Of a stretch of DNA of 64,000 nucleotides, positions 46,594 to 51,393 are shown one piece after another. The stretch's first letter is position 1, and each line of letters starts with the position of its first letter. The translations under genes and the position numbers were made by a program. The stretch is taken from contig OZ038379.1 in the NCBI GenBank assembly GCA_964036045.1, positions 20,646,001 through 20,710,000 on the forward strand, in the 5' to 3' direction. This stretch comes from Eutreptiella sp. 'Long Island Sound 2002' (lineage: Eukaryota; Protista; Euglenida). Under the pieces are notes generated by a model. That model worked only from the letters and a program-made list of their open reading frames with translations, did no database searches and was not told the origin of the DNA.

Positions 46594-47746
46594 AGACTTT
46601 CTACCTCTTTTTTAAACCATGTCAACACCTTCAGAGTTCGCTGCGGTTCATCGTGGCTGCATATTTACATGAGGGGGGCTCATATATACCCACTTGTGGC
46701 TTTCGGTGGCTCCGTGTGGCGCACTGTGGCTACTGCAGCCCACCTGTAGACTACTGTGGCTTTTTGTGGCTCACTGTGGTTTCACCCCGCACACTTGTGG
46801 CTACCTATCACCCAGCACTCTCACTGTGCCCCTTAACTACAATGCAGTGAGCTGGGACCTGAAGCATGTACAGAAAAATTTCTGTCACTCTTCTCTGGGT
46901 TGTTTGCCCTCAGAGCTGCTGGGTAGAGTGTGAAGACCTTTCACAGTTTCTTGTGAAACACAAAATCCTGCGCCAGCCTTGTTGTGCATTGCTGCACGAA
47001 ACTACAGGGTAAAAAATTACGGTTGATTGTCAGTGTTGGCGAAGAAGAAAGTCATCTGGTTCGAGTGTCCATGGTTTATATGCCTGAATCCTGCTGACAG
47101 TTTGTAATAGCAAGAACAAAGTGAGGAAGGTCTGTGCAAATGTGTATGTGCGTGTGTGTGTGCAAACCAGCCATAAAGAGAATAGCACTTGTTGGAAGAG
47201 CAGTTCTCAGACAAGGTTCTCAGACAAAGTAATGTACTGTAAACAGTGAAGTAGGGGCTGTGTCTGTACAGAAATGTGTCAACTGTTTGTGTAACATGAA
47301 ACACAGAAGTAAACATGAGGCATATATAAACCAAAAATGGAGCTGGCCAAAGGAAAGGACAGCAGAAATTCTGAGGTATAACAAAGGCAGAGCGGAAGAA
47401 ACCGCCGCCCCGGCGTGCAAACGGTTGTTGCAAGCTATAGAAAAAAAATATAGAGAACTCAATCCAGAGATGGCATGAGTGGTGTTGTCGCGTGTCAGTG
47501 TATAGTATAGTGTAACGTGTGTGATGACAGTGCAGGGTCTGTGTATGTGTGTGTGTGTGTGTGTTTGTGTCAACGGGTTGGCTGTCTGATGTGTGCTGTG
47601 TTGTGTGTGCTGGTGTGACGCCCCTCTGATTTGTTGCATGCGCTGACCAAACGAAGTCAAAGGTGTGTATGTCCATGACGGCCTTTTGTCAAAAACAGCG
47701 AGCGGAGGGGGCTCTAGGGCGTTAGCGACAAAGTCAAATTTCACAT

Positions 47747-49444
47747 TCACGATGGAATCATTTGAATGAAGCCACGTGAGTGACAGTGCGAGAGAACAGA
47801 GAAGGCTGCATGAGCCGGCACTTTGCAATGTGAGCACCAACCTGGCTGGCCGAGCGTGTCTAGCCAGTCCGACCAGTCTTTGCAGGGCCCCGTGCAGACA
47901 TACCCAAGGGTGGTTACTTTGAACTCAGTGTCCACAACTGGCATGAAAACTGCCGAGGAGAAGAATTGTTCGTTCACCAGAGAGACGGGGTGGTCCTCCA
48001 GTTGCTCCAACCAATCGAGGTCCTCGGCAACTGTCGTTGGGGGAGCTGAACACCCATAGTCCACGGGTACCACGTCACTTGTTTCGCTCCTCAGGGTGCA
48101 GCAAGAGCTCGCATCATCCCAGAACTTACCTCGAACTTCGGATGTACTCAACGAAGTGGTTGAAGCACTCTCGAGAGTAGGTAGGTTGCTGTCTGCAGTG
48201 GTACTTGCGGGAGTCGACTCAGTATCTTCGGAGCAGGCGGATGAAGTCTCAGATTTGGTTGCGCTAAGCCGACGCCGACGTTGTGGACCAGGCGAGCTTT
48301 GATTCGCGGATGAGCTACGGCTGCGAGTAGTGAGTCCTCCAGGATCGGTTTCTTTGGCGTCCGCTTGAGGTTGGTCTTGGAGCTTCGCCGCTGACGTTGC
48401 AGTTGGCGGACGGAGAGCTTGTGTAAGCGATGACCGTGTTCTCTTTGTATCTCGTTGCGCTTGCGCTGGAGTTGGTGGCTTGGGCCACACCGCGGCGGGC
48501 TTTGGAGCCAGCTGCCATTGACGAATGTTCGGAGGCTTCGCTGGTTTTGAGCGGCAGTAAGCCGTGCCCTTCGGTCGCTTGCGTACATGTTTTTGGGTGC
48601 TGAGTCTCAGCTTTCTGATTGGATGTGTGGTTGCCTGTGCGGTGCGCAGGGGTACTTCAGGAGTGAGCACAGAAAACATGGTCTTCATGGCAAACCGGCT
48701 TCTTTCTATCGGTAGCTTTGGTGTCCGCGGGCGAACAACTTGGAACTTTTGGTCCTCTTCTTCTTTCCTTTTTTGATTGACATTTCTCGCTGTGTAAGGA
48801 ATGGGTTCATTCTCCAATTGCGATATTAGACCGGTGTTACATCTCATTCTGCGTGGTTTCTGGCGCTGATGCGAAGCGCAGGAACTGCAAGGAGCATCAC
48901 ATTTTGTCGGGGACAGGCCACAAGAAGAGTGTGGCGAGTGGCAGTGCGAGACCGTCTTCTGTGGACTGTTTTGAACTGACGTCAACGTTGGCGTAAGACG
49001 GAAAACACCTCCTTGTGAGTTGGGTTGCAGCGGCAACGTAGTCATCTTGTCGCTTTGACGGAACGTAGGCTCTGGTTTCTTGAAGCTCGTGTCCATTTGA
49101 ACCGGTGGCAGCATTTCTGATCCTGCGGACAGTTCAAAACATGGCAGAGGCACTGCCCGGAGTTGCACTGCTCTGTGTTGCGGTAGCTGGACATAGTCTG
49201 TACAAGGTGCAGGACAGTGGGCAGAAGGTTTTCTCGGAAAGTGGCTTATCTGCATCAGAAGAGACTGTAACCGTGTGCTTTGCTGTTGAACTTGAAGCAG
49301 AACGGAGTAGACTTGCAGGGCGTTTGTCACGAGCTGGAAGGCTGTGTGCAACAGCAACTCATTGCACAGATCAGGGCGACCAAATGCGCTTTGCGCTGCT
49401 TCAGCGAGATCGGCTGCTGCTGTTGGCGATCTTCTGCTGGACAT
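47747..49444 (-). CDS. Intronless 565-aa ORF of unknown function (Ser/Thr/Pro/Gln-rich, basic patch, C-terminal CxxxC...CxxC)
   Basis: Open for 565 codons inside the retrocopy. N-terminal LLMQISHFPRKP motif; C-terminal YVCTGPCKDW...WCSHCKVPAH. Upstream ATGs suggest a possible frameshift at the N-terminus. Confidence 0.6.
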   Translation of the reverse strand: MSSRRSPTAAADLAEAAQSAFGRPDLCNELLLHTAFQLVTNALQVYSVLLQVQQQSTRLQSLLMQISHFPRKPSAHCPAPCTDYVQLPQHRAVQLRAVPLPCFELSAGSEMLPPVQMDTSFKKPEPTFRQSDKMTTLPLQPNSQGGVFRLTPTLTSVQNSPQKTVSHCHSPHSSCGLSPTKCDAPCSSCASHQRQKPRRMRCNTGLISQLENEPIPYTARNVNQKRKEEEDQKFQVVRPRTPKLPIERSRFAMKTMFSVLTPEVPLRTAQATTHPIRKLRLSTQKHVRKRPKGTAYCRSKPAKPPNIRQWQLAPKPAAVWPKPPTPAQAQRDTKRTRSSLTQALRPPTATSAAKLQDQPQADAKETDPGGLTTRSRSSSANQSSPGPQRRRRLSATKSETSSACSEDTESTPASTTADSNLPTLESASTTSLSTSEVRGKFWDDASSCCTLRSETSDVVPVDYGCSAPPTTVAEDLDWLEQLEDHPVSLVNEQFFSSAVFMPVVDTEFKVTTLGYVCTGPCKDWSDWLDTLGQPGWCSHCKVPAHAAFSVLSHCHSRGFIQMIPS

Positions 49445-49528
49445 CGCTGGGCGCAGTTTTTTGCATGGGACGTCCGGGTTGCATCAAGCTTGCCCGGGTC
49501 CCCTACATCAGAAAAAACCTGATGGCAT

Positions 49529-49555
49529 CGAAAAAAAATGGAAACTCAGAAAGTG
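49529..49555 (-). other. Spliced-leader relic
   Basis: Minus strand reads CACTTTCTGAGTTTCCATTTTTTTTCG; 24/26 identical to the Euglena gracilis SL as I recall it (ACTTTCTGAGTGTCTATTTTTTTTCG). Confidence 0.9.
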
Positions 49556-51393
49556 AGACTTTCTACCTCTTAGCAGTAACGTTTGCGGCGATCCGGAATC
49601 CGGATAGGGAACATTCTGTGACACTCTATTTGTTGCTGTGGACCATGCAATCGACCCTAGCACCATTAAGTCCATGGCTCGTCCCCATTGGGTTTTTTTT
49701 TCATCGCTGTCAACTTCTTCACATTCTTTTTCACCTTTACTAGCGCCGCAATCTCGAATCGCTTCAGTCTGACTTTGGATCTAGGATAACCGTGCTCCGT
49801 GGTCCTCCACTAGTGCCTCTTCGCCTAGCGTTGTCGATCTCGGGGTTGGATCTTCTTCGGGACTGCACCTTGTCAAACTAGGTCGCATGTGTACATCCAA
49901 TGCCCCTTGCTGCACATGAAATTGGTCATCCTTGAAGTCCCCTAAGCAAAAACACCCCGCTTTGGCTTTTTCCTGGGACCCCCTCCCCAGTTGTCTAGCA
50001 TCCGGTACACGGACATGTTAAACTTCTCCGTGTCCTTTGATCCCTGTCATCGTGATGCTCAGGCCCCCCATTATATTTTTCGTTATGCTTTTTGCACTGA
50101 ACGGCGCCTTTTGTGGCTGGCCAGGCCGGGGGGAAAGGCTCTTGCGCGCCAAGCTTTTTTTCGGGGAGGGGCGGGAGCCCGAAACCAAGTTCAATCGCGG
50201 GCTGAGTACCGCTGCGCGTTGCTGTTCTCCTCTGCCCTATCTCAATGAGACTTGGCAGCCCCGTTATAGACAACCGCAGAGCCGGGGCCTCTGCCTGATT
50301 TCTGAAGGCGGTACGGTTGCGGCTTGGGGGTCAGAGCATGACGGCTTGAGCTCTACATCAGGTTGAAAAGTTGAGGAGAAAAGATGAATATTTGGAGTGT
50401 GAGGGTGACCTGTACTCAGCAAAGGGCACTGAGCACGTCAGCTGGTTGCTGTGCACTGCTGCACAACGGACAAGAGTTTCCAAAAGAAAACAATTGAAGG
50501 AAAAGCCGGGTAGATGAAATGGTTGAACTCAGGTATTTAGGCCATAAGTAACCGGATGATTGGTGAAGAGGGACAGTGATCAGTGTGGTTGCAGGCTTAG
50601 GGGCGATGCTGTCAGTTTGCTGCCACAAAACTGACGTGTCAGTACCAGTGACATAGAATTGAGTGTGCTAGTGTATTTGGTGTTTGTTGCCAGGACTGCG
50701 GCAATAGTGTGTGTGTGTGTGTGTGCGTGTGTGAGTGTGTGTGAGTATGTAGCGGTACGTCTGTAGTGCGGTTGCTGAGGGGAGTGGTGCCTGTTGGACG
50801 GTGGTGTGGGCAGGTGAAAATATTTTTGTTCTTCGTGCCATCTTAACTGAACCAAAGTAGGCAGGCAGCAAAGACTGAACGGAACAAAAAGATGGTAATA
50901 CTTGTTGAAACAACGAGTCCGGAGACACGTGTTCTCTGAAAGCACGTTCACTGCAGAATGCAGTAGACAGTAGTTTACTTACTGTCACGTCTCACTGCTA
51001 GACCAAGTCGTTGCAGCGAGATTGGGCGCTCAAAGCAGGTGGCACCTGCGAACGCACAGCAACACAGATGTTGAAAACACAGCGTATGGGCGTGGCCCTT
51101 AGACAGACACAGTCGCTGTCGTGTTGGGCTAAAGACAATAGTGTCCCGGAACACACGATGTTCGTTGCTGCTAAAGGGAGCGAATGTACTGTGGGGCCGC
51201 TCTACGGAGTAAGAGGAAAAAGAAGCTAAGATACAATAAAACAGAGCAAGAGCAGATATCAGTGAGTTGGCTTAAGCCCGAAGGGTAGCTCATATACCAG
51301 AGAAGGCTCGCTGACGAACTCTTCAAAATTTAGATTCATCAGATTTAAGAGTCAAGATGAACTCATTGAAATCCAGTGCGCCTGCTGCATGAA

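Follow-up and report, generated by a model that had tools for sequence, protein, structure and literature searches.

Half LINEs (HAL1) are ORF1-only derivatives of the long interspersed nuclear element (LINE) L1, and the elements SLACS, CZAR and CRE insert into spliced leader (SL) RNA genes. The latter three are named as SL-RNA-gene-specific retrotransposons of trypanosomatids (PMC10161547), in which NARTc and RIME are the non-autonomous partners of L1Tc and ingi, with a 77-nt 5' module, Pr77 (PMC1874656). In dinoflagellates, retrogenes with SL relics have been described as 'mRNA recycling' (Song et al. 2017, PMC5585692, and Slamovits and Keeling 2008 as cited there). Full-text literature searches found no paper on SL-headed retrocopies or LINEs in euglenids, and the genome paper does not mention the leader. 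A study of outrons replaced the SL by AG before mapping (PMC11170887), and SL-headed copies would therefore be missed in it. Here, we analysed an SL-headed insert in a 64,000-nt stretch of a euglenid genome (hereafter the window), which corresponds to positions 20646001-20710000 of contig C2 within a 2.28-Gb assembly that was searched genome-wide. An RNA carrying the host SL was copied into DNA as far as its first nucleotide, or to within one base of it, and was inserted with a 16-bp target-site duplication (TSD) at an A-A-G target, and the same retroposition hit related RNAs many times. The insert probably belongs, as a full-length and young copy, to a non-autonomous, protein-coding family of retroposons in this euglenid.

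Structure and flanks of the insert

The insert comprises 2,946 bp on the minus strand and is bracketed by a 16-bp direct repeat whose copies are 100% identical. Its features are as follows (positions in the window):

49556..49571, no strand: TSD on the 5'-end side, identical to 46594-46609 and directly abutting the SL relic
49529..49555, minus strand: SL relic of 27 nt, the canonical 26-nt SL with two substitutions and, ahead of it, the C that the SL RNA has there
49445..49528, minus strand: 5' leader of 84 nt, with short upstream ATGs, CAG at +8..+10, a 15-nt family motif (about 49491-49505) and a palindromic stem
47747..49444, minus strand: open reading frame (ORF) of 565 codons plus stop, intronless and with no internal stop, for a putative orphan protein predicted to be mostly disordered
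46610..47746, minus strand: 3' untranslated region (UTR) of 1,137 nt, holding CA-rich microsatellites
48315..49555, minus strand: 5' mosaic segment that has no close relative (across the first 310 nt, 81% at best, to two duplicated contig 26 loci)
46610..48314, minus strand: 3' mosaic segment, 91-92% identical to the SL-headed loci L012, L013 and L014, whose frames carry stops
46610..47019, minus strand: 3' tail module of 410 nt, 90-95% identical to the subfamily L015-L019 and L067, the rest of which is unalignable as DNA
46610..46626, minus strand: terminal motif of 17 nt, closing with a short A run and also found at the end of L027
46594..46609, no strand: TSD on the 3'-end side, identical to 49556-49571

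A preliminary description of this locus, made from the sequence alone, had proposed a 16-bp TSD, and the exact copies at 46594-46609 and 49556-49571 bear it out. The repeat cannot be extended on either side, both copies abut the RNA ends exactly, and an exact 16-mer repeat would arise somewhere in 4.2 kb with a probability of ~0.002. On the minus strand, the SL relic (49555-49529) begins at the base directly after the upstream repeat copy; the 24/26 match reported earlier was recovered, together with the preceding C, as in SL-RNA genes. The relic is followed by ATG and the leader, not by a GT donor and the SL-RNA intron. The frame was likewise found to be intronless, with 565 codons and no stop inside (47747-49444, minus strand), and the 3' UTR, put earlier at about 1.1 kb with a short A tail, measured 1,137 nt. 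The last bases of the insert are four A; a further two could belong either to it or to the duplication (hence four to six A), and the downstream repeat copy follows directly. The SL-headed RNA, the TSD, the A run and the 5'-truncated relatives described below together uphold the earlier claim of retroposition of an mRNA intermediate through target-primed reverse transcription.

The right flank (49556-50085) was unique in the genome. The left flank (46272-46608) had a single paralogue of 74% identity (C4:5031136-5031483), its match stopping at the insertion junction, and a right half to go with it was not found. The check suggested beforehand, for an empty site with a single TSD copy, thus came back negative in this assembly. 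A contig-level ENA record was identical over 13.4 kb; it stems from the same assembly project and hence is not independent.

Additionally, seven GCCAC(N)(A/G) motifs were seen in 150 nt of the 3' tail (window 46650-46800, minus strand), compared with 17 in the whole 5.9-kb locus and a shuffle mean of 8.9, and this cluster may be a protein-binding array. RNA structure in the 3' tail was not supported (z-score 0.22). In the leader of the window copy, an 18-nt insertion (about 49470-49487, minus strand), which its closest relatives, L035 and L036, do not have, splits the family stem and brings a second complementary arm pair, so that the hairpin is longer. Elsewhere in the window, a second SL-like stretch (57312-57341, plus strand) matches the first ~20 nt of the spliced leader, including its ACAC start, and then diverges.

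The spliced leader of the genome

The canonical 26-mer SL had 7,985 genome matches at no more than three mismatches, compared with 0 for the control, and no SL-grade match arose in dinucleotide shuffles of the window. The match at the insert is therefore not a fortuitous one to a leader that differs from that of the species, a possibility raised in the preliminary description. An identical SL has been published for Eutreptiella (PMC3621762).

Genome-wide, 1,219 exact SL copies were followed by GT and 1,234 by a base other than G. All eight sampled sites with an SL-RNA intron downstream (L001-L008) share conserved flanks, and a 5S rRNA gene lies ~0.5 kb from the SL in both SL-RNA loci that were scanned (L002 and L004). 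The sites with GT and the SL-RNA intron, conserved flanks and a linked 5S rRNA gene are true SL-RNA genes. The 5S rRNA gene of L002/L004 (2032-2150, minus strand; 102 bits) shares the strand of the SL-RNA gene and lies upstream of it, and tandem SL-RNA genes spaced by 1,303 bp are also present on contig 2. At the insert there was no Rfam match, no 5S gene nearby and no SL-RNA intron. Its two-substitution SL variant had no other occurrence in the genome; accordingly, a variant SL-RNA gene in the assembly was rejected as the source of the substitutions, and the changes must have arisen in the template, during copying or after insertion.

Where the base after an exact SL was not G, it was A at 89 of the first 100 sites. 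The SL-headed repeat families that were sampled all begin with AT and carry a C-rich stretch and CAG 7-12 nt past the relic, which resembles the Euglena acceptor consensus (PMC11170887). One locus, L010 (C1:1042749 region, minus strand), carries three stacked SL relics: a full one, a full one with an internal AG-to-GG change and an 18-nt stump. The sequence behind this stack sits behind a single SL in L084. In L010, repeated rounds have left their record, just as they do in dinoflagellates.

A dispersed family with conserved termini

The family was sampled from the loci among the matches listed in DNA and protein searches of the genome. The DNA search listed three copies, L012, L013 and L014, with 91-92% identity over the last 1,700 nt of the insert, and the many shorter matches all ended at the insert's last base. 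With a 416-nt query from the tail, matches began at positions 152-367 and ended at 414-416, a pattern of shared 3' base and scattered starts that is that of 5' truncation in LINE-type insertion. The protein search listed ~40 related stretches, down to ~30% identity and all uninterrupted. An SL relic stands at the head of at least 12 related loci, down to about 30% protein identity, and every relative with a visible 5' end is SL-headed and intronless.

Several relatives have their own TSD. With only those of at most one mismatch accepted, the TSDs matched at 16/16 positions in the window copy, 15/16 in L012, 14/15 in L013, 16/17 in L014, 16/17 in L020, 19/19 in L027 and 17/18 in L067. All seven (15-19 bp) begin with AAG or AAA and lie at unrelated sites. 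The search for other SL relics with TSDs, proposed in the preliminary description, was thus rewarded by six relatives with 15-19-bp duplications of their own. Such dispersed copies from independent insertions are found in LINE-dependent retroposons as well.

Both ends of the family are conserved. Upstream of the 15-nt leader motif, 13 of 13 family loci have the SL, and its distance from the motif is fixed; a single SL, without stump or doubling, is present at the insert and in all 13 leaders, and family copies start within 0-3 nt of the first base of the SL RNA. The leader stem carries one compensatory A-U to U-A swap (8 versus 4 sequences). At the other end, the 17-nt terminal motif has 78 exact genome copies, and 233 at no more than one mismatch compared with 30 for the reversed control. 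It is shared by L027, whose protein is 34% identical to that of the window copy and which has a perfect 19-bp TSD and an open 514-codon frame. Since the window copy and L027 both have a perfect TSD and an open frame, deeply separated lineages must both have inserted recently. The terminal motif also occurs three times on C19 (2748254, 2749617 and 2750980, minus strand) at an exact spacing of 1,363 bp; part of the element therefore became a tandem array there.

Three family lineages make up the insert, which is a mosaic. At element position ~1,242 (window 48314/48315), the sequence passes abruptly from unalignable with L012-L014 to ~92% identity with them, and identity to L067 jumps to ~95% at element position 2,537 (window 47019/47020). 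The first 310 nt are closest (81%) to two duplicated loci on contig 26 with a worn SL. Borders as sharp as these speak for template switching while the RNA was reverse transcribed, or for recombination among source copies.

The encoded protein and its constraint

The 565-codon protein had no match in Pfam, PHROGs or PDB, alone or as a family profile. No Pfam match was found in 16 family members, which have no reverse transcriptase or endonuclease of their own. A search of the ESM Atlas with the ORF found nothing, and no similarity to ORF1 or ORF2 of the LINE described below was detected. Just two entries, the L034 ORF and the window's own model, came out of a word search of proteins, and an exhaustive profile search of a 15-billion-protein collection returned 38 representatives. 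All ten of those examined were single sequences from one ENA source with large contigs, and they are taken to belong to this genome's own assembly. Judged by these searches, the protein appears to be an orphan, present only in this genome. AlphaFold gave a mean predicted local distance difference test score of 47.8, with a confident helix at residues 7-65 and low confidence for the rest, and the family alignment contained conserved short motifs and a Cys-rich C-terminal stretch.

Changes private to the window copy reached 2.4% for the ORF, compared with 2.0% for the UTR; 3 were synonymous and 9 non-synonymous. Purifying selection on this copy was not seen, the private changes being similarly frequent in ORF and UTR, and the copy looks to have drifted neutrally since insertion. 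Because these changes look neutral, the open ORF, which the preliminary description had pointed out, is no evidence of function. Between family members, the ratio of non-synonymous to synonymous substitution rates was 0.80 for L029 and L034, a close intact pair, and ~0.4 for a deeper pair that is saturated.

An SL-headed LINE as candidate mobiliser

Of 22 exact SL sites not followed by G that were sampled, 16 fell in four repeated families, 11 of these 16 in one LINE. The 11 LINE copies were chosen by exact SL match, and all have a perfect SL. Two of the copies were delimited:

L088, 59-8514: LINE copy starting with the exact SL
L089, 59-8518, reverse: LINE copy starting with the exact SL

The pair is 8.46 kb long and 99.6% identical, and encodes an ORF1 of ~980 codons and an ORF2 of 1,681 codons, the latter with matches to Exo_endo_phos, RVT_1 and RNase_H. 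Both copies have an A6-9 tail and TSDs of 13-18 bp beginning with AGCC or AAGG, and the 3' end of the LINE has at least 994 candidate genome copies of 95-99% identity. A young endonuclease/reverse-transcriptase LINE is hence present in the same genome as the family. ORF1 gave a borderline match to a 2OG-Fe(II) oxygenase (AlkB-like; 31.5 bits versus a cut-off of 31.2), and its frame runs through the SL without a stop. The window itself holds a 3' end of this LINE, truncated on its 5' side and separated from the insert by 533 bp (50089-50351, minus strand; 91% to L088:8196-8455).

A LINE of the L088/L089 kind likely mobilises the family. The TSD length and target are similar and the 3' ends differ, and this LINE is therefore only a candidate mobiliser. 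It would supply endonuclease and reverse transcriptase in trans, and target-primed reverse transcription would start at the short A run of the family RNA. The mosaic might form when the reverse transcriptase switches templates, or by recombination between source copies, and the conserved 5' leader and 3' terminus may be cis-elements for expression or mobilisation.

Origin of the insert

The preliminary description had regarded the insert as a retrocopy of an ordinary intron-containing gene. Its anatomy alone would fit a one-off retrocopy, or processed pseudogene, of an ordinary trans-spliced host gene with introns, but we consider this very unlikely, as no intron-bearing or SL-less parent was present among the listed matches of the whole-genome DNA and protein searches. 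Moreover, the 5' 1,241 nt have no relative above 81%, the relatives are all SL-headed and intronless with their own TSDs, and the 5' and 3' termini are kept across copies with only 34% protein identity. With SL-headed relatives and a short A tail that follows a family-conserved 3' terminus, a retrocopy of an ordinary host gene is not supported. It is hardly conceivable that no insertion took place and that the structure stems from an artefact of the assembly, from duplication at the DNA level or from a repeat that arose by chance. The lack of an empty allele in the assembly would agree with this, but the repeat copies lie exactly at both RNA ends, the same architecture recurs in relatives at unrelated sites, and the ENA contig record, although of the same project, is identical. 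Another alternative is a host multigene family, in which the abundant mRNAs of a few normal masters with an outron and an AG acceptor were retrocopied repeatedly and the SL-headed copies were dead on arrival. The copy-private changes look neutral, L012-L014 carry stops, and the four close copies (the window copy and L012-L014) form a star-like set whose changes are mostly private. The absence of an SL stump or doubled SL in the family is also expected without re-expression. The SL relic ends in CG, not AG, and the idea that a C-to-A change at this last CG makes the relic a splice acceptor was rejected, as such changes were not enriched (41 single variants: 1 A, 13 G and 27 T). Nevertheless, each deep lineage would need its own master, and none was seen among the ~40 protein matches and 13 leaders; modules were exchanged among lineages, and the family appears to be absent from all other organisms in the 15-billion-protein collection. 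We therefore judge this explanation unlikely.

Similarly improbable, in our view, is that the SL is inherited rather than added, the SL and leader forming a portable internal promoter with transcription from the first base. This would explain both the starts within 0-3 nt of the SL RNA first base and why no outron master was seen, and there are precedents in Pr77 of L1Tc/NARTc (PMC1874656) and in the promoter motif proposed for DinoSL relics (PMC5585692). L013 and L014, which are independent insertions, have the same altered SL/leader junction, and the SL relics bear 11 changes in 182 nt compared with 5 mismatches in 118 pairs for the TSDs, a ~3-fold excess over what the TSDs predict. These two hints are weak. 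The shared junction is explicable by T-run slippage at the SL, which occurred in 4 of 12 copies, together with a leader that begins one base further ahead in the source; the TSD comparison is biased by the exclusion of TSDs with more than one mismatch; and the 11 LINE copies have a perfect SL, although they were selected by exact match. New SL-joined RNA of the family would come either from a few outron masters outside the sample or from an SL-plus-leader promoter that is inherited. In the latter case, which we hold to be improbable, euglenid LINEs and a coding non-autonomous family would have taken over the host SL as a heritable 5' end; SL-headed copies would stay active wherever they inserted, and retroposition would have a factor of a new kind in the orphan protein.

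Several points weigh against our preferred interpretation, a non-autonomous coding retroposon family served by a LINE. We infer that family copies are transcribed and trans-spliced, and there may be master genes beyond the loci sampled that have introns or a normal outron. The 3' end of the LINE L088/L089 differs from that of the family, and no LINE sharing the family's 3' tail was found among the LINE copies characterised, which represent one LINE. The leaders of LINE and family agree at 16/28 positions at best without gaps, and at 8/28 for the window copy; homology between the LINE leader and that of the window copy was rejected as not significant. The substitution-rate ratios suggest that the family frame was kept over long times under weak constraint, so selection on the protein would be weak, and the protein may benefit either the element or the host.

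Comparison with known systems

The SL-tagged DNA copies are direct physical proof that RNA already mature and trans-spliced was written back into a euglenid genome. Such write-back has been documented mainly in dinoflagellates; here, it is not confined to host genes, as a family of ~3-kb coding RNAs with conserved ends multiplies in this way, beside SL-headed LINEs. This is relevant to the repeat annotation of this 2.3-Gb genome, of which a large fraction may be repeats. In a 2.37-Gb Euglena gracilis assembly, possibly not this one, repeats make up 58.84%, a large share of them unclassified (PMC11252322). Gene prediction readily mistakes intronless SL-headed ORFs for genes, and P0001 is such a model. 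The family also bears on how a promoterless retrocopy is expressed in an organism reliant on trans-splicing.

Like SLACS, CZAR and CRE, the insert is a euglenozoan retroelement physically joined to SL sequence; unlike in those elements, the SL lies inside the TSD, and the flanks are unrelated, unique, non-SL DNA. HAL1 elements are similar in being coding, reverse-transcriptase-less and LINE-dependent, and in having a long N-terminal helix and basic disordered regions, whereas the window ORF has no detectable homology to ORF1 of the LINE characterised here. The retrocopies mobilised in trans by L1-type elements (PMC2912911) share TSDs of 13-19 bp starting with A, a 3' A run, full and truncated copies, and a young endonuclease/reverse-transcriptase LINE in the same genome. 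They differ from the present copies, in which the A run measures 4-9 nt even when young, the copied RNA is that of a family with conserved ends rather than an ordinary host mRNA, and an SL forms the 5' end.

NARTc and RIME are similar in that they form euglenozoan non-autonomous families with a conserved 5' module, and the LINEs share the first 26-28 nt, which here are the SL. However, Pr77 is not an SL and its transcripts are unspliced, and NARTc and RIME are non-coding, truncated LINEs, whereas the family described here encodes an unrelated protein of its own, an apparent orphan, and no LINE is known to share its 3' end.

With the SL-relic retrogenes of dinoflagellates, the insert has in common a genomic SL directly before an intronless ORF, the mark of an RNA intermediate, and a phenomenon that is genome-wide. 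Retrogenes of that type have an SL-less parent, usually with introns, and none was found for the insert among the matches listed. The insert also carries no tandem or truncated SL relic and belongs to a euglenozoan lineage, and, in contrast to the dinoflagellate retrogenes, it is part of a dispersed family with conserved termini, clear TSDs and 5'-truncated relatives.

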